A stretch of 20,000 nucleotides of DNA, taken from Penicillus capitatus. Taxonomy: Eukaryota; Plantae; Chlorophyta. Within the stretch, counting starts at the first letter, position 1; every line of letters starts with the position of its first letter. This document shows positions 1 through 20,000 of this stretch, in pieces. A program made the position numbers and the translations under genes. The notes under the pieces were generated by a model. The model made no database searches, was not told where the DNA came from, and worked only from the letters and a program-made list of their open reading frames with translations. The stretch is taken from NCBI GenBank assembly GCA_965649825.1, contig OZ287711.1, positions 25,101 to 45,100 of the forward strand, written 5' to 3'.

Positions 1-3000
1 GGCGGCGGCGGCGGCATGTGTCTGGTGTACAGCGTCCTGCCAGAGAGCTCGATCGGCGACGTCATCGTCACAGGAGTGGCCTTCGATGGCAACGTCGCTT
101 CCATAGGAGGTATGCCTGTTCGCAGACCGAAACCACTCGTCGAGGCGTCCTTCCAGGCGGTGCCTCCGTGCAAGTGGCCGGAGACGGCTGGAACCGACAT
201 CTTCAGAATAACTGTCCGGAGATCCGACCAACGACGGAACCCTGTCGACTCTTTCGGCTGGTGAACGTCACCGCGACGGGAAACGTCGCCCAGTACGGAG
301 CGGGAGGATGGTTTGTCTCCCATCCAGAGTCCGTTCTCGTCGGCTGCCACGAGTTCAATCCAGAGGGATGGGTGGATCTGCTGTCCGCGTCGACGTCTGA
401 TCGGCTGTCAGAAGAGTACTGTCTGCGACTCCGGAACAACACTGTTCTGGTGATGATCGCCGATCGCACTTCTGAGTCTCCTGTTGATCGCTCGTATGTC
501 TTTAGGACGCGGATGGAGAGTACGGAAACGACATGGCGAGCGGCGTCTACTCGCTGAAGCTGCTGAACCCAACCTCTCCAATCGTCAACCATACGGGCGG
601 AAAGACGCTGATTCCTCCGTGTCCCAGTCCCGAAGATTGCAGCAAGAGCGAATCGGATGGCATCAGAATCGCCGTCAAGGATGCCTTCAATCAGACAATC
701 ACTGGCGGCATTCCTGATGCAGGTGAGACTCTGAGTGATGGGCACCGTCTTACAGAGATTTATTGACAGAACTGCAAGTGCTCTTGGTGTCAACTGCGAT
801 CCTTGGAGAACAGGTCTATTTAGCAGAAAAGGGAGTCATCCATGTGAACAACACTCAGGGGGTTGGTGTTAACCGCACTTCTGAAATCCTATTCCGGTAT
901 GGAGAGTTGGAGACAAACTTGACATTCTCTACCAGGGAATGCTTTCCTGGAGAGATCGAGGCAAGCAATGAGTGCCAGCTCTGTCAAACAGATCAGTATT
1001 CCTTCAATACCTCCAGCATCTGCAGTGACTGTGAGAATCGTGCCAAATGCAGTGGTGGATCCAGTCTTGTCCCAATCGATGGTTATTGGCACTCGACTCC
1101 CTTCTCTCCGCAGTTTCACGAATGCATCATTAAAGAAGCTTGCGAGTATAAAAGCCGAAAGGACGTCGACATTGAACGAGAGAATGTTCTGAAACAGTAC
1201 TATGAAGACAGCAGCAAGATATCCGCTGAGATTGCCGAACTGGATTTGTATCTCTTAACACGGGGTACACAGCCTGTATACAATGAATACTTTCAATGCT
1301 CCGACGGATACAGTGGTATTCTGTGCGGTTCTTGTGAAGCAGGTTATGGGCACTTTGCTGGAGGTGAATGTATCAAGTGCCCAAAAAATCGAGGATGGTC
1401 TATCATACTAACAATCTTTGCAGCACTTATCGCGTTTGTATTACTGGCTCTCAACATCTTCTTAACATTTAATTCGACAAGAAAGCAGATCTGGGTCGCC
1501 AATGCAAAGAGAAGCCAAGCTCAGCAAGCCTCACCTTCACGCAGTGCTGATGGAGTGGCGGACTTCAGCAGCGATTTAGATCAGAGCAAAAGGCCCTTGA
1601 CAGGAATCACTCGCTTGAAACTCAGTGAGGCATAGACATTGTGTCCGTCTATGATTGCGAGTGTGGTTTTTGGATCTCAGGACATCCAACGCAATCCAAC
1701 GGCGGAAAGAATCAACGCGATCCTCTAATCACCGATCACATCATTGCCATCGAAAAACTGACAGAGATCGCCAAGGTTCACATTCTCTTCCATTCATCAG
1801 CTTGTAATCACCCTTTCTTCCATCCTGCAGATTCTGGTCAACTATGTTCAAGTGACGACTTTGGGGTTGAGTATCAATACGAAGTGGCCGCTGAGTATCA
1901 AGCAATTCCTGTCATTCCTGAGTCATATCTGTGAGTCATGCTGTCGCATACTAATGGAGATGTGTCTATAGATTTGCTGGTGGCTACAACGAGCGGGACA
2001 TACTATGCCCCTCTTGAGTGTACTTTTGAGGAAAACGTTGAAGACGGAGCAGAAGGACCTGATACAATCAAGGCCCTCTGGTTACGCGTCTTCTTTCCAT
2101 TCTATTTCTGGGCAGCTATCATCACTGGACGACGCCTGTTACATCATTTCCTCTCCTGGTATCAACACAGAAATTCTCCAGGACCGAATAGAACAAGTAT
2201 CCAGAATAACGCAAACAAGAAATCAGCAAATGGTGATGCTGGCGACAATGATGTGCACAGAACCACATACATCGTTGTTGTTACACTTGTCACCTTTTAT
2301 TTTTCTTTCATTGACTTTGCATCTGAGTTCATGAAAACAGTGAACTGCATTCGAGTGGACAACGACGCACCAGACCCGCCAAATGATTATGATCGTTATG
2401 CTTTGGAAACGGATTCTGTCTGGGGAGAGGATACCAGTCTCCGTTGCTTTGAAGGCCGTCACATCGTTACTGGAATCCTCGGAATCTTTGGTTTGTTGGT
2501 TCTTGGAGCGCTCATTGCTTTGATGATCGTATGGATATGGGTGAGTCAGAGAAGAGTCAGCAATAGAGATCCGTCAAACAAGACAGACTGGTCGATCACA
2601 GAAGATCCCGATTTCATTGCCCGCTACGGTTTCATCTACCAAGGGTACAGACACGAAGGTCTGGCCATGTGCTGGGAAGCCGTTATCACAATGCGAAAGG
2701 GACTCGTCGTGGCAGCTGTTATCTTTGCCTCGAGGAAAGGGCCAAACCTCCAGGCCGCTCTGGGATTGGGAGTCCTTATCGTCGCCGTGACGATGCACTG
2801 GCTGGTCATGCCTTACATGGTGCACGAACCTGCACACCCCAATGTTCCAAACTACGCCGAGAGTTTGTACCTTGGACCAGAAAACGGCAGTGCCTCAGTG
2901 CCTAACGACAGCAGACCATCTCGCACGTTCTGTTCTGCCTTGTACGTTCAATGGGTGAAGTGGCAGAATCGCATCTCGCACAACACACTGGAAGCTGGAT

Positions 3001-3392
3001 CGCTGCTCATGTCCATCTCGATCTTCTATTCTGCCATTGTCTTCGGCGATTCTGGAACAACGAGCGCTGGAAAGGTGACGTTGGCAACGGTCGTTTTCAT
3101 TCTGAATCTGCTGTTTGTCATCTACATTCTCTATCGCCTCTACGCTGGGTTACATTTGGTTCTGGATATGCATTTCGTATTCATTGAGTCTTCTCCCGAT
3201 TATGCCGAGCTGGACTTTCCCTTTACCAAAGGAGGAGGGCTGTTTGCTTTCATTCACAAGATCAGCGATGCTTTCAGATTCCAACGTCACCATGGCGATC
3301 TGGTGCAGAAGTACACAGAATATAAGTTCTCTGAGCCTGACCAACGTACGAATGAAACCGAGCACGAGCTTCAAATCGTAAGCCAAGGATGA
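1..3392 (+). CDS. 5'-partial large membrane protein: Pmp/pectin-lyase-like FxxNxAxxGG repeats, Cys-rich (GCC2/GCC3, EGF-like) stalk, C-terminal multi-pass TM region
   Basis: ORF fragments join in frame via GT-AG introns 110-156, 450-505, 723-769, 1625-1680, 1776-1830 and 1931-1971; stop TGA at 3390-3392. Motifs seen: VAFDGNVASIGG, ATGNVAQYGAGG, YGNDMAS, VKDAFNQ, CQLCQTDQYSF..CSDC..AKCSGG..GYW, CSDGYSGILCGSCEAGY..C, ILVNYVQ..WP, WGEDTSLRCFEGRH, RYGFIYQGYR..CWEAV, NTLE. Several hydrophobic helices. This architecture is typical of a large uncharacterised family in algae and protists. Confidence 0.85.
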
Positions 3393-3954: not shown

Positions 3955-6750
3955 TTAAGTCATGCTTTTGCTGAAGACGAGATCTCTTTTTTTGCGGAGG
4001 CTCTCTTTGTACAGTTCCTTTCTGTTATGGGATGGAATTCTGGTCGATCGTGCTCCTTTTCCGGCATCGATTCTTGGCTTTTTGGGAGTCATCGTGACAC
4101 CCAACTTCAAATCTCCGCCAAGGAGCATGCGACTCGCCTATTGCACGACACAAGAGTGAACAAACATGATTATACTCAACGAAAGAAGGAACCATCTCAT
4201 AGATATTGTTCTCGAGCGCCTTGGGCACTGTCCCCGGTCTTCGCTTCTTCAGAGACTGAAATGCAATTTCCAGCATTCTGGGTTGGCATGCCAACGAAAA
4301 GATGTCTTCATAACTGTCACCATCCTTCTTGTACTTCTGCAATTCTTTCAACATCCATGGATCGAAGTCCTTTCGGGATGGCTGATGCAACAGCTGATTC
4401 TGGGGTCGGTTTTCTGGCGTATCTGGACACAGACAGCAGTTGGCAAACAGACACGGAAAGAAAAAAAAACATGGTGGATGGAAACGCACCTGGTTGGTTC
4501 AGCTTCGCTAAGGACTGCAGCCGTTCCTCCACACGCGGATACATGACTGGCAGTTCATCACTCAGCTCATTCGTGAACATATCCCGATAACGACGTTCTG
4601 CCTTCATGATCCGGTGCAGTGCCTGGGTATTCACCTTACTGTAGTACCTCCTGTGATCCCAACAATGCGAATCATTCTCTTTTGCGAGGATCGATGCACG
4701 TACTCAGACCCGTTGACCTCCTCGAATTCCTTCATCGCTTCACCATCGATCTTCTCGGGGGGCTGAAGGCCTTCGAGGACTTTGATTCGTTCCAGTCTTT
4801 CAGCCGACGGTATAGGTATTCGATTGATCCGTGTAACATAACGCTCTAGCTTACCATAACCATCTAATCGCAACAGGGCTGCAAGCAGAGGCACATTTTT
4901 GAGAGAGGGATCTGAAAGGCAGTGCGTTACGGCTTACTCTTAGCATCGTCCACTTCGCGCCCTGCCAGTGATGGATCCGTCAGTCGATTGTAGCCGTCCT
5001 CATACACGGAGGGTGTCTCGTAAAGCCACCCCTTGATTTCTTCACTATCCAAGTTCGTTTGTTGATCATCTGAAAACGGCCCGTGAATGGCACGAGTCAG
5101 CAGCGCGAACGTGCAGTGCACCTTTATCAATTTCGTATCCGGGGACCACTTTGCCTTCTACTCGCAGTGTCTTTCCGCTTAACCTCACCGACTTGGTGTA
5201 GGGATCGGCATGGGTCCCATTCATGGAAAAGAGCTTTCTTTCATTGAAACGATCAAGTCTCTTCGAAGGAGGGTCGAAAAAGTTGGGATAGGTCCTTCTC
5301 TCTGGGATCGTGAGCTTCGAAATTGTACCATCTTCTTCCACGAAGTGACGCGGAATCTCCGGATCAAGATCCTTGTGCTTGTCATCCAATATCTAAGACG
5401 CACGAATAAATGTAGATAGGAGAGATGAAGAAACCCCAAACCTCCGGCGCTCCCTCGTCCTCTTCGTAATCGTACTTCTCCATGAGCATCGGTCTTGCCA
5501 CCCAGTATTCCTGACCGTATAGTTTGTGTCTGTTAGACTTGCCTGGATCTTGTCCTGGATCTTCGAATGTATTGGCTGAAGATTTATTCCAGAAGTCCTG
5601 GTCCCCTGTACCGGGAATGAAATCGTTGTACTGTCGTTGAGGAGGCGCCCCAACACAGTCTCCATCAGGCGGTGTCAACCATCTGCCCGACATTTCACAC
5701 GAGGATTCACAGCCAAGGAGGGTCTCACTTTGGCCGAGGTGGATTATAGTCATACGTCGGTGGATCATCATCCGGTGGAAGAAATGCCTCTTCAGAGAGC
5801 TCTTCCATGACAAGACGTCCAAAGACAGCTTCTTCTAATGCCTCGTCCCCGTCCAATCTCGTAACCTTTTGGGTGTTCTCTGTCTGCAGCGTGATCTCTT
5901 CTGGCTGGCCCCCAGTCGACACAGGGATCTCCGATGCTGATGCGTTTCTTTCATCCGGCACAGTAGAGGACCGCCCCGCTTGAGATGCATTCTCCCTCAT
6001 TGTTTTCATAAAGTCAACAAAACCATCCATCTGTGCTGGCGGATCCTTAGCCACCGATCTGCCTGATTTCTGATCGAGATACGCATCAACATCTTCATAA
6101 CTCTCCGCCGACTGTCCAGGAGATCCGCCTACAGGAACATCGCCATCTGCACTTCAACACAGGCGTCGTGCATGGCGCGTACTTTGATGCAGCCAGTCTC
6201 CTTGCCAGTCTCCACTGTACCCCGGCCGATTGTACTGTCGAAATGTCGAGTTCTTGATGGAATTCGGTGTAAAGGCACGGGAGACTTTTTGACCTGGTAT
6301 GTTTCGTGGCCGCTCGACTCTTCTGGGATCCATATCATGTTCGATATGTCGTGCCATTCTTCGAAATTCGCGACTGTGTGTAATCAATGGCTGTCGACCT
6401 CTTGTTTGGTTGTCGCCAAAATTCAGCCATTTCCTCTCGGCTTCGATATCGCCGATCGGCGGCGCGTCTTCCTGCTTTTCAAGAACTTCTTCTGGCTCGG
6501 GCAGTCTTCTCAACAACCACTCCTTCTTCGGCTGAGGCGCCGGAGGCTTTGGCGCCGGCTTGTGCTTCTGGAAAAATTCCTTAACCTTGAGCAGACTCGT
6601 GGAAGGTCGATCTTCTTCGGCCGCTTCGAATCTCTCCTGAAGTTGATAATCGGATGCAGAGCTGTCGTCATCTCCGACATATTCGTTGCTCAAAAAACGA
6701 CAGACCACATCGCAACGCCGCACGCAGATCAGCCTTCGGCGTAGCAACAT
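3955..6750 (-). CDS. Uncharacterised ~792-aa protein: Arg-rich N-terminal presequence-like segment, acidic/Pro-rich low-complexity middle, C-terminal region resembling group II intron maturase RT0-RT1
   Basis: Nine exons join in frame via introns 6147-6182, 5683-5728, 5393-5441, 5070-5121, 4879-4937 (acceptor uncertain), 4651-4703, 4423-4489 and 4138-4192. CDS 2379 nt, stop TAA 3955-3957. The N-terminus MLLRRRLICVRRCDVVCRFLS is Arg-rich and nearly acid-free. An upstream in-frame ATG at 6798 is an alternative start. Gene structure is well supported; the maturase-like call is inference. Confidence 0.75.
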
Positions 6751-6796
6751 ATTCGTTTCATTGATGACAGAAAATGCACTACATCTGTGCGCATCC

Positions 6797-7087
6797 ATGG
6801 CCTCGACGGGTCAAGACCACTTCAAAGGCAGAGATGCCATGCAACTCGCGCAGCTCGCTCGATCTGTACGCGATCAGGCAAAGTCGACGAAGAATGAGAA
6901 GGAAGCGTCGGCGAAGCCGGATCGAATTGGAGAGGCAGAGCATCGCGAATCAAGAACCAGTGATGTCCTCGGAGATAGCGGAACGGATAGGTGGATAGAA
7001 GAGCTCGCGCAAAGCTTATCCATGACGCCCCAAAAGCGAAAGAAGCTGCCGTTTCCACAACTGTTCGACAATGAACTGCGTTTTTGA
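6797..7087 (+). CDS. Hypothetical 96-aa charged protein (possibly the first part of a longer gene continuing in the +1 frame to 7301 or beyond)
   Basis: ATG in good context (gcatccATGG), coding-like composition (KNEKEASAKPDRIGEAEHRES, TPQKRKK NLS-like). No recognisable family. ATG lies only 46 nt from the divergent ATG at 6750. Confidence 0.3.
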   Translation: MASTGQDHFKGRDAMQLAQLARSVRDQAKSTKNEKEASAKPDRIGEAEHRESRTSDVLGDSGTDRWIEELAQSLSMTPQKRKKLPFPQLFDNELRF

Positions 7088-7384
7088 TTTCTCCCTGGAG
7101 CAGATGACGCATCCCTGGTATCGCCAACGTGAAATCACTGACCCATGTTTACCTCCTCTGTGGCGACCCGCAGCAATGAAGCTACCGTCTGCCATTCTGA
7201 GACGGACATACATCGATTTGAATGCCTCTTCCAGGAGAATCGGCAGACACGTGTCCCGCTTTCGCAAAATGTTGCGGCAGACAATAGACGTATCGCATTG
7301 AATGTGCGTGAACACGCTTCTGGCTTTGAAGTCTTTTGCACATGTGTCCTAGATCTACAAGAAGAGTATCTCATTCCACCAGTT

Positions 7385-10094
7385 TCATGTCCTGCGTCCA
7401 CCACTGGCTTCTTTCTCTTCCATATACTTCTGTCTTTCGATTTCTAAACACAGATAGATGCATTCTACCAACAGACGTATCCCTGACATGCCCATACTGA
7501 GTTGGACAGACTCGGGCACGTCTGGACAGACTTCCAGGATCAAGAACATGATCGCTCCAAGCACATGCTCCAAGACCAATACGCCGATACAAAAGCAACC
7601 AACCTCATAAGACAAACACCGCCATGAAGTCCCTCCATCTGTTCATCTGTTGACATCTCAATGAAGATACCTGCGGTGTAGACATCGATGCGCACCAGTT
7701 CTTCATGTGGTCGGAGCTCAGGACAAACATCAGAATATTTGTGATAAGAGAGAGCCATGCCTGCAAGCCATCACACATACACGTGTCTCTTGACGAAGTG
7801 ACGCCGACTGCACCTGAATTTGAAGCACAACCTGCCATGATCCGATGCCGTTTGCTCGAACGACGGGGGGTCTCTGCACGACGAAGCAGAGCTTGTACAC
7901 ATCGGACTTCATTTCGATCAAATTGTAGAGGATTTGAATGAAGGCTGCCAAAGGAAAGGCACTGGCAAACATCGTCACATACCCAAAAGCGATCACCATC
8001 TCCACGAAATCGTCAAACTCTGCAGATAGAGATTCCTCTCAACGAATAGAAGACGGTTGTGCGTATTGCAAGTCTCCACCTTCGTAGGCATCCAGACGTG
8101 CATCCCTCACTGCCTGTTCATGGACTGCTCGCTCGCCCGATTCCCGTTTCAGCTTCTCCAATGCCTGGCGAGATGCTCTGTCTGCAATCCATGGGTGTCA
8201 TCTCGAAGGAGTGATCCATCAGACCACACTTGTGAAGAACTGAAGGATGAGTGGCAGTAACAGTTCCGTCCCAACACGGCGAAGACAGTCCACTGTATAG
8301 AGAGAAGACAGTTCCTTGCGCACCTAAACACTCAATACGATCCAATCCTGTCCAGCGAAGAATTCGATGTCGAGTGTACTCGGAAGATGTCTCTTTCCAC
8401 AAATGCCAGGTAGAAGATGGCAATGTAGCAATCAAATGCTTCGAAGCAGACCCGTTTCAGAATCAAAGACGATTCGTGGGACTAAAGAAACAAGATGCAT
8501 GATTATACCACCGATATCGGGAGAAGGCAACCTGTTCGGTCTTGTGGTTTTCCCAGGCTGTTAAATTCTCAGCAATCACTCGGTAGATCCTGTTCAGCAG
8601 CTGAATGGTGATGACGTGAAGGACGACGGGCACAAAACACATCACTTGACTGTTGGGATCAAACAGAGCACCTGTCACAGAGGTCCGTAACGATAAAGTC
8701 TCAAGCATCTGCTTGTCTTCGCACCTGGCTGAGCGTACTGAGACAAGCTGTGGATGTAGAATAGCGACGATTCTGAGTGCACATATCCTTGGAGATTCAA
8801 ACTGAATGCCATGGCGGCCACAGCAGGGACGAGGAGGATGGTACTGACCACAACAGAGACACTGTACTTTAGAAATCGCATACTCTTAGGATAGTGGAGT
8901 TCCTCATGTCCCGTCACCGGATTCTTCCTCAATGTCCCTGAAGAGCACCATTGTGTTCTGGCTATTCACCCATGCACAGCGCTCGGGGATCACCTTTGAA
9001 GCCAGGACGCACAACTTCTCTCTTGGCGATATCAAATGTGTCCCACTGACATGCCAACTCCGATGCCTTCCGTCGCCACATTTTCAGAAATGTCACTGAC
9101 CAGAGGACCATGAAAAAGGAGAAGTAGGCAATGTATGGACTGTCCTCCACTGTGTAACCTGCCAGACAAGTGTGCATCACCATGGGGAATCTTTTTCTTT
9201 CCATGACTGCGGGGTACTGCAGTCGTACCGAGTGCTGTATTATAAGCGAATAGACTGCCTCCGGCGATGCCCGGGATCAACAGACACCAGGTGTAGAAAT
9301 TCATCCAGGCAGTGTAGTAAGCAACCTGTTCGCCAAAGTAACGGCGAAGACTGTTCACAGGAACAAACAGACGACGCCTTCGCATCACACATTCATCACA
9401 TTTCGAGAGTTTATCAGGAGAGTGGCCCTGTCTGTCTACTTGGCACGATTCCAAATCTCTCGAGAGGACTGTGGATTGTGAATGGGTGTTTGCAACTCGA
9501 GGATACCATGTCTACAGCAGAAAGGCCACCGATATACACCTTGGCGAGAGGTCTATTGCGGAAGATGGGACGACAGACCTCTTGCATGTCAGCAACAATG
9601 CATCCGATGTGTCCATCGTGGCAGAAGCCTCTCCACGTTTTTGCATCAAAGACAGGAATTCCTGGTCCACCTATCGAACATCACACTTTTCATTTTTCTC
9701 GTCGATGCCCATTCGATTCGGGACACATGAAGTCTGTCTAGCAATGAACCGAGCAAGTGCTGTTTCTCAAACGGCATCAGAAAGTCGTCGCTGTTGACGT
9801 TCTTAAAGGACTTTCTCTTTGAAATGTCAAACTCTCTGAATTCTCCATCGGTTCTCTCTTTCTTCAGACCAAATGTCGACGCCTCCTCCAACAATCGCTC
9901 CGCCGTCAATTCAACCGTCAGCATGCCTGGACGTCAGTGGTCGCATGCGGGGAGACAAAGCAGACACCATCCATACGTTGAGGCTGGTCGAATTTCTGCA
10001 CCATACATCCCGCCTTCTCGATGCGTCGCTTCAGATACCCAATCACGTCCTCTCTTTCACTGCCTTCTTCGAAAACGAGCACGTACTGCTGCAT
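7385..10094 (-). CDS. TMEM16: Anoctamin / TMEM16 family Ca2+-activated channel or scramblase (TMEM16K/ANO10-like)
   Basis: About 14 short introns join fragments with anoctamin hallmarks: GILELQTPIH, YFGEQVAYYTAWMNFY, FLKMWRRK..LACQW, RPGFKG..NPVTG, LTAWENHKTE, LILKRVCFEAFDCYIAIFYLAF, EFDDFVEMVIAFGYVTMFASAFPLAA, NLIEMKSD..QRP..RANGIGSW, VLEH..PDVP. Acidic Ca2+-site residues in TM6-8 appear retained. Start ATG 10094 is probable; stop TGA 7385-7387. Confidence 0.93.
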
Positions 10095-10253
10095 GACGAC
10101 AATAAGCACACTATAGAGTCGTTTGCTCTAGACGCTTCTTTCTTTTTAAACAGAAAAGCAGATGAAGAATTGCTGTAACATGACGGCAATGCGTCGTCAG
10201 ATGCTTTGGAATGGATGCGAATATCCACCGACGTGTCAGTGGCGCTAATAGTT

Positions 10254-10258
10254 TTACA
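10254..10258 (-). promoter_or_regulatory. Candidate polyadenylation signal TGTAA (SLOG/DprA-like gene)
   Basis: Forward TTACA is TGTAA on the minus strand, about 29 nt after the stop at 10287. Confidence 0.55.
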
Positions 10259-10286
10259 GGTGTCCAAAATGTCGTGGACGCTCGAG

Positions 10287-11304
10287 TCAGTCCAGATAGA
10301 ACAAGGTCACGATTTTCCGCAACTTCCGTGCCTCTTCACACGTCTCCAACATCAATCGCGAATCGTGAAACACAAAGCAAATGACCTGTCACGTGCAGAC
10401 ATCACACAAGGGTCACCACGCAGACATCATCGCTAACCGACACCACGCACTTGCTGCACTTTCATCAGGATGTTCTGATTGCACAGCTTGCTGGCATCGA
10501 ACAGACTCAGATCATTATTCCAAGGCATCTCAACGATGTTCTGCACCTTAAAGCCAAAAGAGAATCTCACTCTTTTCCTTCTCTATATCTGGAGCATTGC
10601 GTTCGATTACTTGCTTCAGAAGTTCTTGAGATTCTTGCGGTTGTTTGCGCAGGCTTTGTGGTAACACGACGGTGAGCTTTTCTGGCTTCTCTGCCCTCAG
10701 AGCGCCACGAATCACTGCAGCGTTTGTTCCAATGGCACCAGAGGTGTAGACATGATTTCCCTTGACCGACACAACAGCCTCGCCACGAAGCAGTGCGATG
10801 CCAAATGTGTTGACGTGTGTACCGTGAGTACCAATGCATAACTAAGAATCTCCACCAGTTTCTGATGCGTTACCCCCATGTTCCGGGTGCCAAAGAAACC
10901 AACAGCCTTAGGACCGTTCTGCTGAATGGCCAACAACTCCTAGATTTCACCAAAGGCATCGCCAATGAGACACCTGTTCTTCGTGCCGATCGCCATGGAC
11001 GCACCGAGAGGTACTCCAGATCGGCAGATTGTTTCTTTTCGGGATCGCTTTTCTCTCTCAGCTGTACACCTGCCACGGCACTCTGTCCTTGTGTCGGCAG
11101 GTCCACCTTCTCTTCGGGCGATTGCAGTCCTCTGATGATGTTCTTCTGTCCAGATGCATCGCATATTCGATATCTGGTCAGCGACGGGACGACGCGTCTT
11201 CTGGAGACGTAACCGGTGAAGGGACTTCGGATGAATTTTTTCGAAACACTTTTGCGAGGAATCGTTTCGTACACGGCATTTGATAAGTGAACAGGTCTGT
11301 TCAT
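10287..11304 (-). CDS. Plastid-targeted conserved protein of cyanobacterial type, SLOG (Smf/DprA/LOG) Rossmann-like fold
   Basis: Five exons, four GT-AG introns. Ser/Arg-rich transit-peptide-like N-terminus (MNRPVHLSN..FTGYVSRRRVV), then ADLEYLSELLAIQQNGPKAVGFFGTRNMG..HQKLVEILSYALVLTGNHVYTSGAIGTNAAVIRGALRAEKPEKLTVVLPQSL..QP.ESQELL..CN..VQQVICFVFHDSRL.LETCEEA..LRKIVTLFYLD*. I recognise this as a conserved plant/cyanobacterial family. TSGAIGTNAAVIRGAL parallels the DprA SG.A.GID.AAH.GAL motif. Confidence 0.85.
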
Positions 11305-15011: not shown

Positions 15012-15344
15012 TCCAACAGTTGATCGGTCCGTCTCGTACGTGCCGTGCGTTTGTTAGATGATGAAAATGGCGCATCCAATGGGAACGATTTCGTCCCGTC
15101 GTCGTCCTCTCCATCATCATTTCTTTTTGTTCTCGCTGGTTCTCACTCAGCGAGTCGTCCACTGCCATCTTCACGCGCGTCCACGTTTTTAAGACTCTCT
15201 CCATTAAGCAGCCATACATTGCGTTCTCTCTCGAGTGCTGTTTATGAAAAGACGGCTCGGGGAGGACCGAGAGCACGCAGCAGAGAGACAGCTGTTACCT
15301 TCCCCACTCTGTCGTCCTCTTCCTTTTCGAAAGAGACGTCTTTC
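15012..15344. promoter_or_regulatory. Divergent promoter / 5'UTR region
   Basis: 333 nt between head-to-head ATGs (15011 minus, 15345 plus); CT-rich on the plus strand. Confidence 0.5.
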
Positions 15345-17481
15345 ATGGCGGAAGAGGAGATCGCACGACTGACTGCCGCCGTCAATCGTTTTGCCATTCA
15401 AAAAGGCTGGGTGCCCAATTCGCATGATGAGATGGTCTGGGAGACATGGAAAGCATTCAGTACGGGACAGGGACATCGCGTATCGACGGCGTCCTCTTCG
15501 CGCTGCTCCGATGAAATGCTGCCCGTCTGGGAGCAATGCTCTACGATTCTAAACGGGCTGCTGCGAAACGGAAATGCCTATCTGTTCTCGAGGCCAGTCG
15601 ATCCTAAACGCGATGGCGTCCCTAATTATTTTGAAGTTATCAAGAAGCCGATGGATTTGGGAACGGTCAAGCAGAAACTGGCTCTGAATGCGCGACGCCG
15701 TCATGAGCCACTCAAAGCGGCCATGTATAAATGTCCTAGTGAATTTAAGGCAGACATGGATTTGATATGGGAGAACTGCTTTCTCTATAACCCCCCTGGA
15801 TATGAAGCGCATGACATGGGTGCGGCATTGAAGGCAGAATTCGAACGGAGATGGAAGGCACTGCGAATCGAAGAGAATATCCGAAAGATCCACAGAAAAG
15901 TGAGATACCTTGACAGCTCTGAATGGTGGTCCATCAGATATGTATGGTATGGCCTTTCTCTCAGTCGCAAGCCAGAGATGGATCGGGACACGAAGACTCG
16001 TCGAGAGCATTAAATTCGTCGATCGGCAAAGAATTCAAGAAGCGGAAACCTGGGATGCACGATACAGGCATCGCCTCTGGAAAAGAGAAAATGAATGATC
16101 AGTCGTCTGCTCGAAATTCGTTGCTCGAGCGACGAACGGATATGCATAATAATTTGTCACGTGACCACCATCCACCACACCAATCCCTTCCAGCTGCGAG
16201 AAAGGAGCGGGGGAAACATGGTGTCCTCGGATCGACTGCCAAGAATAATGCAAAAGTAGACAACATGCCATTGTTTGAGATGCGGGGGATGGATGGTCGT
16301 CATTGTGCTCAGAGAGTGGCTGATGTGACAGCACAACGAAGAAAGATAGATACAGTGTCGAAAGGAGGGATCAAGAAAACGCGTGCGGAGGGCGGCCAGA
16401 ATATGAAGAAAGGGACATTGGCTTCTCGAAAAGCGAATCGAACAACAACAGAAGGGCAGAAAGTGAAGAAACTATTGCAGTCTTGCAAGATGACCAGCAC
16501 CACCACCACCCCTAAAGAGCCTTCTTCCGCCAATCAGGGACACAGACAGCCGCCAAGGGAATGGATACCTCCGATCGAACGAGGCGGGGCGGATGGCACA
16601 TCACACAGGAGTATTCCAAGTTGCAAGCCTGTGGAGAAACCGCCGCCGCCGCCGCCACAACAGCAGCAACAGCAAGCGTCTCCCGAGCCAGTCGTACAAC
16701 AAGCGCCGCCGGCGGCGACGGTGGCGGTGCAAACACATGACGTCAAGCTGCAGAAATGCATTGCGTTGAATGAGCATTTGCAGAGATCTCTGAAAGGCCT
16801 CGAACGGAAAAACGAAAAACAGATGTCAGATTACGAGGCTCGGAGACGCCTGTCTCTCTTGCTGGAGACCATAAACTTGACACCTTTGAGTCTCGTCGTC
16901 GAGCATCTGATCGGCAAAGATCCTTCTGTTAGAGCAGGAACACCGTCAAGTATAGATCAGTTAGAAATCGAGACAGTGCGCCGAGCACTTAGAACGATCG
17001 GTGCCGCCAACAAAAGTGTGCACTGTCTTGCTGTCTTCCGATGGCGACAACAGATGCATTGTAGAGTCAAAGGCAGAGCAGCAGCATGTGGTCGAGGAGA
17101 ATCCACCTTGTTCAAAGAAACCGCCGCTCTCTTGCATGCAGCGTGTGACTTCGCCGATCCGGAGAGTCGATGCCGAGCAGGCTGCCAAGAGAAAGAGAAC
17201 AGAAGATGAAGGATGCCGTTTGGCGACCAAGACACCAATGGTAGGCGAAAATTGTGGCCTGTCCATCTGATGCATGGTTCTAGGTGAGTCCTCCCTCGCC
17301 TCCGTGGCATCGGCGTCTGACGCATAAACGTGAAGTGTGGGATAATGCTGTGGGTCTCTGTGGTGTGACACCCGGACAAGATGGTTCAGATTTAGGATTG
17401 ACACCTCGACAGGAATCAAATGAGAGCAGTTGGGAGGAGGCAGTGCCGGACGATTTAGAAGATGGGGAGATACTTGATTGA
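15345..17481 (+). CDS. GTE: BET/GTE-family transcription cofactor: one bromodomain plus extra-terminal (ET/NET) domain
   Basis: Bromodomain: AYLFSRPVDP..VPNYFEVIKKPMDLGTVKQKL..Y..F.ADMDLIWENCFLYNPPG, with the acetyl-Lys-binding Asn present. ET-like region: KQMSDYEARRRLSLLLETINLTPLSLVVEHL..DPS..IDQLEIETVRRAL. Introns 15900-15964, 17001 (or 17016)-17064 and 17241-17283; stop TGA 17479-17481. Confidence 0.88.
16640..16675 (+). repeat. CCG / CAG-CAA trinucleotide run encoding PPPPPP-QQQQQQ
   Basis: Seen directly within the GTE CDS (ccgccgccgccgccgccacaacagcagcaacagcaa). Confidence 0.8.
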
Positions 17482-18097: not shown

Positions 18098-20000
18098 ATG
18101 ATCGACCGTTACTTCATGAGTGAGATGAAGTGTGTGACCAGCAGTTCCAGCAAGAATGTGGACACGTGATAGGTTTACAACCAATGCCAAGACATGAGAG
18201 AATCAGACCACAAGATTGTCTGAACTTCCATTTCAGAAGCAGAAGATTTGAAGTGCAGAGAACGCAGAACGAAAGGGACAACTGTCGAAAGTCTGTTTTT
18301 AGACTGAAGATGGACAACAGAGAAGGCAGCCCAATGACAGGCTACAGCAGCAGAGAAGAAAGCATCTCAATCACAAACCACAACGCCATCCGCCCGCCTT
18401 TGATCGCGAAGCATTTCTCCAAGCGAATTTCAGATTTGCTGTATCTGGTGAGCCATACATGATCAGGCTTAGTCGTGATCTTGATGTGACATTAGATGCT
18501 GTGGATATTGCCACTTTTCTCTCTAATCCAAATCAACCCTTTGCTTGGGAAGACGTTCTGCAGGTGCAGATGTTTACATCGGAAAACACCATGTGCCCCA
18601 TTTCGCTGGACAGTCCTCCGATCTGTCCGCATATCACGCCATGCGGTCACATCTTCTCATTCCCCTCGATCATGCGCCATCTGGTAGACGACCGACAGTC
18701 GATGCTCAGAAATGGATGGCGTGGTTCGCAGATGACAGCGGCTGCTAAGGGTACACCGGCACTCTGTCCTCTATGTTATACCAAGTTTGACGCACAAACG
18801 TTGCGTTGGGTGCATCTCGTTCCACAAAAGGTGCATTCAGATCTCATCGACGAGTGCCATTGACATGTGGTGTCTTATCAAAGGCACCCGTGCGTGGAGC
18901 TGAATGGAGGTTCTCTCTGATGAAGAAGACGAAGAATGGCGTTACTCCCGTTTGTGCATCGAGTAAGAAGTCCATGGTGTGCAGTGCGGCCATACATGAT
19001 GTGTTTGTCAGGTATGGATACACAGAAGCCTGCAGGGACATTCTCAATCGTCGACGATGTCAAATCTCATTTCCTCAATGTATCTTCGGAGTTGGCAGCC
19101 GCTGTTCTCTCGGTATCATCTACGGAGAGAAAAGAGAGAGCGATGGGCGTGTGTTGCCAGATTGGAGAGGATTCAGAAATGGAGGTCGAACTGGAAGCAT
19201 GCTTCGAGTGTTCTGAGAATCTGTGCCAGAGAGCCAAAGGTCCTCGCGCCTGAATAACAGGGTGTCCTGCATCTTTGTGTTTTCTAGATTTCGAACAGCG
19301 GCGATTGCAGCAGCTTGACAGCCAAGGCATCGTTCAGAAGACAGAAGTGCAGATCGTCGGCGCGGCAGAAAGCATCGAGAAGTCGATTCGACAGGTTTGG
19401 CAAGAGAGGGCGATACCCATAACTAACACATGTTTCTTTGCTGCTTTCTCCAGAATTTCTACAAACAACTCGAAAGGAAGGACACAGAAGAGCAGACATG
19501 TCATCACACATCAGACCTTCCGGCATCATCATCGCACCAGCAAGATTGGCCACCTCCAAGCGAAACACCAGATATGTTTGACGATGATCCGTGGCCCGAG
19601 GATGAAGAAACAGGTAAAGAAGCCTCTATGTCTGACACGAGTGGCAAGGATGTCACCTTCCCAGCTACTTTTGAGTTCCTTCCGATGATATAAAAATCGT
19701 TTTGGTTCATTTCTGAGCCATCTGAGCCTCTGTTTGATACATACGAGAGAGACCACACACATCCCTTCTCCAACGATACATGACATCGTCGCTGTGTCTT
19801 TGTAGAGTATCTCTCGTTTCAGTTCGGATCCTTCAGTCTCTTTCCGTTCCAAGGTCCGTCGGAGCAGACGGTCCCTGAAGAGACACCTAAGGATGTGGAA
19901 GTCGGTGAGTATTTCTACCAGTCTGAAGATGGACAGTGGCTGTTTCTGGATCCTGTCAACGTGCAATGTCTAATGACGCATTATGGCTCAGCCAAAGATT
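18098..20000 (+). CDS. RNF10: RNF10/Mag2-like RING protein, 3'-partial; start uncertain (ATG 18098, or an upstream extension through acceptor 18007 to ATG 17690)
   Basis: Introns 18120-18172, 18253-18302, 18448-18495, 18831-18883, 18963-19011, 19240-19287 and 19395-19453, plus at least one more near 19.6-19.8 kb. RNF10 signature blocks: QDCLNFHF, FDREAFLQANFRFAVS, NPNQPFAWEDV, CPISLDSPPICPHITPCGHIFSFPSIMRHL..CPLC, YFYQSEDGQWLFLDPVNVQCLMTHYGS. Confidence 0.9.

Follow-up and report, generated by a model that had tools for sequence, protein, structure and literature searches.

We analyzed a 20,000-nucleotide window of contig OZ287711.1 (positions 25,101 to 45,100 of the forward strand; all positions below are within this window), with a focus on a gene on its minus strand at 3955-6750. 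This gene belongs to an undescribed, lineage-restricted family, and the last ~105 residues of its product form a conserved module that is under purifying selection. The first-pass annotation of this DNA had described the C-terminus as a fragment (RT0-RT1) of a group II intron maturase, attached to a nuclear-encoded protein with a presequence. As explained below, no defining feature marks the protein as a maturase; what the comparisons suggest is a helical segment, similar to the RT0 region of group II intron reverse transcriptases (RTs), whose origin is uncertain. The features of the gene are:

3955-6750, minus strand: whole gene, from start codon to stop codon; nine coding exons, 786 amino acids
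6750-6183, 6128-5729, 5682-5442, 5392-5122, 5069-4938, 4878-4704, 4650-4490, 4422-4193, and 4137-3955, minus strand: coding exons
6679-6750, minus strand: presequence-like N-terminus, MLLRRRLICVRRCDVVCRFLSNEY, with six arginines in 18 residues and then an acidic stretch
4226-4354, minus strand: RT0-like segment, MLKELQKYKKDGDSYEDIFSLACQPRMLEIAFQSLKKRRPGTV (MLKEL...RRPGTV, 43 residues), with three short predicted helices
4138-4192, minus strand: last spliceosomal intron, 55 nt, GT..AG, at a conserved position
4090-4137, minus strand: last-exon part of a predicted fourth helix, ASRMLLGGDLKLGVTM; exon 8 encodes the start of this helix, at about 4193-4219 (ALENNIYEM)
4030-4089, minus strand: conserved basic glycine-rich tail, TPKKPRIDAGKGARSTRIPS, which reads PKKP..(D/H)(A/S)G.GARS..I.S in six species
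3955-4029, minus strand: non-conserved end, HNRKELYKESLRKKRDLVFSKSMT, and stop codon; different in every ortholog, including the closest (L004)

To assemble the gene model, we linked open frames through GT..AG introns of 46-67 nt. There are eight such introns between 6798 and 3955 on the minus strand (54, 46, 49, 52, 59, 53, 67, and 55 nt), and the coding sequence from the ATG at 6798 is unbroken for 2409 nt (an 802-residue model). The sole full-length homolog, P0001 (EukProt EP00210, Caulerpa lentillifera g3043.t1), is collinear with the gene model over 95% of its length, reads through every junction, and has the same end point. The exon layout is also the same in L003, L004, and L097 (by tblastn), and these three and L001 share the spliceosomal GT..AG junctions, which confirms that this is a nuclear, intron-containing gene.

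The open reading frame (ORF), as called mechanically, opens at ATG 6798 with MDAHRCSAFSVINETN... (6751-6798, minus strand). All orthologs start at ML.RR(R/Y), which corresponds to ATG 6750, and L004 does not contain an upstream methionine. Because P0001, P0122, P0125, and P0132 begin at the equivalent of ATG 6750, the protein has 786 residues, not 802, and the first 16 codons (6751-6798) are probably a 5' untranslated region.

At the other end of the gene, splicing out 4138-4192 joins ...ALENNIYEM to ASRMLLGG..., and the C-terminal peptide that the first-pass annotation quoted is the exact minus-strand product once this intron is removed. The intron itself is borne out by the Caulerpa protein, which is continuous across the junction (FEQ/ASRILL), and by its relatives: we read the last two exons in six further members of the family, and in all six, the intron follows (Y/F)E(M/L/Q) at the same position. 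The stop codon is at 3955-3957, so the protein ends 24 residues past ...RIPS, and, as had been noted, there is no YADD or X region.

Between the window and L004, 47 of the 55 nt of the last intron are identical (about 85%), a divergence no greater than that of the coding sequence on either side. This similarity may reflect splicing constraint in such short introns.

To describe the family, we searched 5.8 billion proteins with a word-indexed method and found one homolog, P0001 (E = 8e-164, 41% identity, 95% coverage). A family profile was built from P0001 and the exact translations of the window's exons; four clean fragments were kept after MAFFT scattered weaker ones. An exhaustive HMMER search of 1.84 billion representative proteins gave 21 matches at E ≤ 0.001. 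All 21 have 40-222 amino acids and are exon-sized ORFs of this gene on eukaryotic DNA in metagenomes or in assemblies of read sets; there is no RT among them. The members that we use below are L004 (a close relative that is syntenic, with an anoctamin gene upstream as in the window), L003 (a divergent relative that carries the whole gene), L001 and L002 (short contigs with family members), and L097 and L098 (a second Caulerpa-like species).

Scanning metagenome contigs with a profile of the module alone found no relative, and a word-indexed search of the 5.8 billion proteins with this profile, at E ≤ 10, gave family members only, with no intermediate RT. This last search returned five family fragments yet missed P0001, which contains the module, so the word prefilter can overlook true members. 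At E ≤ 10, neither the 802-residue model nor any of six C-termini has a match in Pfam. Sequence searches of PDB gave chance-level matches only, and an Rfam scan of the window found no family at the gathering score. To judge from these sequences, the family seems to occur only in Caulerpa and a few uncultured relatives, and the host is probably a siphonous green alga that is related to Caulerpa and belongs to the Bryopsidales. The search for orthologs in other chlorophytes that had been proposed did find them in Caulerpa and its relatives, but it gave no link to any RT.

Across six to seven species, identities within the module go down to ~54%. The seven-species consensus is D(F/Y)D.W..EL.K......(Y/F)ED.F.L.C.P.MLE.AF.SL..RRPG..P...(E/D).....E for exon 8 and A(S/A)R(M/I)L......K.......(K/R)K.P...(A/S)G.GARS..I.S for the last exon. 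The ratio of nonsynonymous to synonymous divergence (dN/dS) between the window and L004 is 0.14 in exon 8 and 0.21 in the last exon, with dS of 0.42-0.68. In the AlphaFold2 model of the module (mean predicted local distance difference test score, or pLDDT, of 55.1), the helices of the RT0-like segment have pLDDT of 57-66. The A(S/A)R(M/I)L of the fourth helix is kept in six species, and the model places the corresponding helix at residues 70-80 in the Caulerpa fragment. Conservation stops abruptly after ...I.S: the stop codon is preceded by HNRKELYKESLRKKRDLVFSKSMT in the window, by HNRRELNKEKTPERTLSSSRQA in L004, by HAIKRERK in L001, by QPEKAKSRRE in Caulerpa, and by QPEKLKERKE in L097.

In L003 (8147-8420), the frame past GARSRRIFS continues for ~60 codons, while the others stop within 8-24 residues. 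This extension could be due to an extra intron (GTAATC after ...NAIR) or it could be a truly longer tail.

The rest of the protein has a different character. As the first-pass annotation had proposed, the N-terminus looks like a presequence, provided that it is read from ATG 6750 instead of 6798: judged by eye, it is arginine-rich, with an ML.RR(R/Y) start that is conserved in five orthologs (among them Caulerpa, P0122, P0125, and P0132), and it would fit either an algal transit peptide or a presequence for the mitochondrial matrix. The mature chain is strongly hydrophilic (grand average of hydropathy of -1.03), and the isoelectric point is 5.65 for the whole protein versus 11.1 for the last exon. 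In the AlphaFold2 model of the Caulerpa ortholog, the mean pLDDT is 45.6, with 545 of 777 residues below 50. Conservation sits in short islands, such as GQEYWVA.PML.EKYD and IKVLEG.Q. Pfam gave no match to PPR or mTERF proteins; there is a single hairpin-like unit, and no tandem repeats stand out by eye.

The proposal of a maturase fragment rested on three sequence elements, and these fared differently. For YEDIF..P.ML..AF..L, the local similarity to RTs is above that of shuffled sequences, although it is at twilight level only. M.SRMLLGG turned out to be a conserved helix, but it adds no measurable RT score. RSTRIPSHNRK..E.LR, which had been matched to RT1, is a chance resemblance: it scores 10.4, and 61 of 200 shuffles were as good. 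Within the last exon, the top local match nonetheless lands on RPLGIP, with a score at chance. Just R...I.S of this element is conserved, and the invariant P, L, and G of RTs are unmatched. Its second half, which had been aligned to D-K..Q-E, differs in every ortholog, even at ~80% overall identity: in place of NRKELYKESLR, L004 has NRRELNKEKTPER. Because the RT1 part is at chance and unconserved, "RT0-RT1 maturase fragment" is too strong a description, and Pfam, PDB sequences, and Foldseek gave no match that would support it. More broadly, the catalytic regions of a maturase are absent. There is no match to PF00078 at E ≤ 10 in the whole protein or the six C-termini, which would cover RT1-RT7 and YADD; no match to Intron_maturas2 or GIIM in the 802-residue model, with nothing downstream of the module that could be an X/thumb domain; and no Pfam match to RVT_1, RVT_N, or the maturase families.

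We then considered the RT0-like segment with profile comparisons. As a starting point we took the N-terminus of LtrA, which is 100% identical to database entries. A narrow template of 120 LtrA-like proteins (at least 67% identical), compared with the window and Caulerpa sequences, gave a null result: in hmmsearch the score was 0.6 bits, which 88 of 1000 shuffles matched or exceeded, and hhalign gave P = 0.4. It took more diverse templates and six to seven orthologs for a signal to emerge. The diverse set combined GsI-IIC, LtrA, and four LtrA-like proteins with twelve group II RTs from several classes, all twelve from plasmids of non-pathogens; the diverse RTs were drawn from a tblastn search of plasmids, and a scan of genome contigs gave only close relatives of LtrA, which were not used. 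With this set, hhalign aligned the six-species module to the RTs with a probability of 27% (P = 7e-4, score 26.3, 40 columns). Column-shuffled controls had a mean score of 11.7 and a maximum of 21.6 (0 of 400 reached 26.3), the reversed query scored 13.6, and the reversed template scored 14.2. The signal lies entirely in exon 8 (score 25.8; 0 of 200 shuffles were as good). Across the hhalign runs, observed scores were 26-34 versus shuffle means of 10-12 and maxima of 17-22 (0 of 400, 0 of 200, and 0 of 300 as good), and over the template sets, the probability ranged over 27-81% and P from 1e-5 to 1e-3.

The signal is also specific in location. With templates restricted to the N-terminal extension (NTE) and RT0, the probability rose to 74.5% (P = 2.7e-5, 42 columns), with MLKEL...RRPGTV aligned to LtrA residues 7-50. 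When we cut the 806-column family alignment into 70-column windows, 2 of 22 scored, with probabilities of 75-81% and P of 1-3e-5; both contain YEDIFSLACQPRMLEIAFQSLKKRRPG, and the other twenty had probabilities below 0.5%. A decoy template from RT1-RT4 scored 10.7 against the module, which is noise. In addition, all seven members were positive against an HMMER model of RT N-termini (6.0-13.3 bits, per-sequence P of 4e-6 to 7e-4), while the reversed sequences of the members scored -2.3 to 0.3 bits.

Other results weaken the case. By template subset, LtrA/mitochondrial-like RTs gave P = 0.009, a mixture of other classes gave P = 0.0014, and both combined gave P = 1.4e-4, but the RT class with a long W..I.W N-terminal extension gave no signal, and neither did the Bacillus-type and class-C-like subsets alone. 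Eight newly fetched RTs, which are independent templates added once the subsets were fixed, gave P = 0.02 by themselves. True remote homology usually gets sharper with better profiles, but here the pooled P weakened as templates were added: 1.4e-5 with 13, 5.5e-5 with 21, and 8.4e-5 with 26. We also compared the RT0 profile to 177,635 PDB sequences. It found LtrA (108 bits), GsI-IIC (49), three others (34-37), and TeI4h (21), but it also matched MDA5 (19.1), a designed protein (16.3), phycocyanin (16.2), SRP68 (14.7), a VSG (13.6), and annexin V (13.3). Because these unrelated proteins score 13-19 bits, the family's 6-13 bits lie inside the database-wide noise from real proteins. In the reverse direction, the family profile finds no RT in PDB at E ≤ 10. 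If P values of 1e-5 to 1e-4 are multiplied by ~20,000 families, the database-wide E is roughly 0.2-2, and the RT0 hypothesis arose from the very resemblance under test. Overall, the evidence for RT0 is suggestive but not sufficient.

The structural check that had been proposed gave no RT match either. Foldseek comparison of the module model to PDB had a best E of 5.9, with TM-scores of 0.29 or less, and the model (pLDDT 55.1) is too poor for this to decide the matter or to count as a negative. The four predicted helices occur in the order of NTE alpha-helices 1-4, which would be compatible with RT0 but not diagnostic.

The best PDB match of the family profile is a QCR9-like subunit of complex III from Toxoplasma gondii (9g9t chain I, 15.7 bits, E = 0.13). 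It covers module residues 10-54 (about 4263-4395, minus strand), and it rose from 13.1 to 15.7 bits as the profile grew from two to six sequences. This match is marginal and we treated it as noise, but it is the only lead other than RTs.

The gene's neighbors in the window are of other kinds. Upstream, at about 7000-11000 on the minus strand, is an anoctamin/TMEM16 gene, with exon ORFs at 7733-8005 and 9035-9454 that match PF04547 (E = 1e-23 and 3e-9). Since L004 also has this neighbor, the locus is syntenic between the two species. On the other side is a convergent gene (763-3392, plus strand), with a cysteine-rich extracellular exon (763-1632) and then a multi-pass membrane region (1938-3389); this region has a sub-threshold match to a TRP channel family (PF06011, 25 bits versus a cutoff of 28.5), and the L004 ortholog of the gene has faint matches to Beta_helix and Chlam_PMP. 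Farther away on the plus strand are a bromodomain protein (15045-16010, PF00439, E = 1e-18) and an ORF (18459-18860) whose RING/U-box match is weak, at 21 bits, and under the cutoff.

What does this protein do? Our tentative preference, which we hold at somewhat short of even confidence, is that it works in an organelle, most likely the mitochondrion, where its conserved C-terminus, basic and helical, would attach it to RNA or to a ribonucleoprotein. The arginine-rich presequence would carry a hydrophilic and mostly disordered protein of 786 residues into the organelle, and the C-terminal module would be the end that docks it. The unstructured tail, rich in lysine, arginine, and glycine (PKKP..AGKGARS.RI.S), would make non-specific contacts with the RNA backbone, the helices of the module would provide a specific surface, and the long acidic body would bear short conserved islands for further contacts. 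The intron-rich mitochondrial context of these algae (see below) makes a role with RNA attractive. Several points weigh against this reading. The overall acidity is unlike that of most organellar RNA-binding proteins, and a membrane or an acidic protein surface could just as well be the docking site of the basic tail. Chloroplast and mitochondrial presequences are alike in green algae, which bears on the choice of organelle. AlphaFold2 confidence is low (mean pLDDT 45.6 for the Caulerpa protein and 55.1 for the module), so the helices are only predictions. Finally, the architecture would suit an extended supernumerary subunit of a large complex about equally well.

That last idea is a rival in its own right: the resemblance to RT0 may be coincidental, with a helix-proline-helix and basic tail in a lineage-specific subunit or assembly factor of an organellar complex (the mitoribosome, the respiratory chain, or the import machinery) that makes mainly protein contacts. 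We consider this unlikely. In its favor, the helix-proline-helix and basic tail pattern occurs in many families, a long disordered chain with short conserved islands is typical of supernumerary subunits that wrap a complex, the protein is acidic overall, the top PDB match is to a lineage-specific subunit of Toxoplasma complex III (if marginally, at 15.7 bits and E = 0.13), and the noise from real proteins on the RT0 profile equals the family's own score. However, there is no significant match to any solved subunit of a mitoribosome or respiratory complex, and neither shuffles nor reversed profiles nor the 20 windows without the segment come close to the RT0-like score. A decaying pseudo-exon or a mis-modeled 3' end would account for the unconserved extreme tail (3958-4029) and for the L003 frame that continues for ~60 codons, but this explanation is effectively refuted by the dN/dS of 0.14-0.21 at dS of 0.42-0.68, by the conservation of the module and the intron position in six to seven species, and by the independent Caulerpa annotation, which shares the end point.

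Alternatively, the module may have originated when the 5' end of a group II intron ORF moved from an organelle to the nucleus and became the gene's terminal exons, with the NTE/RT0 helices as the only part still recognizable. The protein would then serve, in trans, as a cofactor for the splicing or folding of the many group II introns without maturases in the mitochondria of siphonous algae. We view this as no likelier than the coincidence just described. It would explain the hhalign results against RT0 profiles (probability 74-81%, P of 1e-5 to 4e-5), the 7 of 7 members that are positive against RT N-termini when their reversed sequences are not, and a match that spans positions conserved in both families (F..LF....P..L..AF..L..(R/N)(R/K).G). 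It is also in accord with the collinear position of the last exon's best local match, on RPLGIP, with the presequence-like N-terminus, and with a host lineage that has 29-47 mitochondrial introns and few RVT ORFs. Yet the signal shrinks with more templates, the eight new RTs alone give just P = 0.02, and three RT subclasses give none; unrelated PDB proteins reach 13-19 bits on the RT0 profile, where a true distant group II RT reaches only 21; the family profile recovers no RT at E ≤ 10 from PDB or from the 5.8 billion proteins; RT1 is at chance and unconserved; the G.DG anchor of the RT0 loop and the fingers are absent; Foldseek found no match; and the hypothesis was tested on the resemblance that generated it. 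Taken by itself, RT0 ancestry of the module is possible but doubtful. The fuller scenario of the first-pass annotation, in which the protein is derived from RT0 and acts in group II splicing, is rather improbable; a role in splicing is pure inference. A particular form of it, in which only the NTE/RT0 helices were captured, fused to a long disordered protein that is targeted to the organelle, and turned into a new trans-acting cofactor for the dozens of group II introns without maturases in the inflated mitochondrial genomes of these algae, seems to us a little less likely than descent from an intron ORF as such.

If there is a link to group II intron RTs (LtrA, 5G2X; GsI-IIC RT, 6AR1; Pfam RVT_N), it is to their NTE/RT0, which likewise has three short helices in the same order and with the same spacing. 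The pattern common to both is F..L(F/Y)....P..L..A(F/Y)..(L/V)..(N/R)(K/R).G. However, the similarity is at the twilight level, the module does not contain the G.DG anchor or any fingers, palm, or thumb to pack on, there is no RVT_N match, and the segment is C-terminal to an unrelated chain of 680 residues, not N-terminal. The RT0 region of group II RTs lines the path of the RNA template or acceptor, and in the GsI-IIC RT, a conserved hydrophobic/G.DG part anchors the RT0 loop onto the fingers (PMC8363836).

Known descendants of group II RTs are also informative. Like nMAT1-4 of land plants, our protein is nuclear-encoded and probably targeted to an organelle, but no sequence search connects it to them. 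The nMATs retain the full RT domain and the X (maturase) domain, and our protein lacks both. They originated from group II RTs and serve several introns of the mitochondrion in trans, and with them land plants answer the same problem (PMC8393795); this is the role that the first-pass annotation had proposed for our protein. Compared to MatK, the present case would be a mirror image, which keeps the piece that MatK lost and has no X domain. In MatK, the N-terminal RT motifs have disappeared, while RT5-7 remain along with the X domain, which is the part most tied to maturase activity. MatK is a precedent for a truncated descendant of a group II RT with a working role in splicing (PMC8393795). 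Group II RT folds have been reused for host functions in Prp8 (PMC8393795) and in the bacterial protein G2L4 (PMC11761039). Those proteins keep the whole RT fold, while here at most ~40 residues are recognizable. We know of no domesticated RT that keeps NTE/RT0 without the polymerase.

Among green algae, the siphonous ones are near the top in the intron load of their mitochondrial genomes, and to our knowledge, no nuclear splicing factors for these introns have been reported. The first-pass annotation had suggested looking for group II introns that lack maturases in the organelle genomes, and published data bear on this: the mitochondrial genome of Ostreobium has 47 introns, mostly group II, and only four RVT ORFs, and that of Caulerpa has 29 introns (PMC6944098). 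If the RT0 ancestry is false, this is still an undescribed, lineage-specific family that is under selection, and it is a warning about how misleading motif-level resemblance can be. If it is true, the helices of NTE/RT0 can be retained and used without a polymerase, and this would be a new form of RT domestication, in which NTE/RT0 alone is kept. For the mitochondrial introns of siphonous algae, a lineage-restricted protein with a presequence-like N-terminus and an end that is possibly derived from a maturase is a concrete candidate factor.

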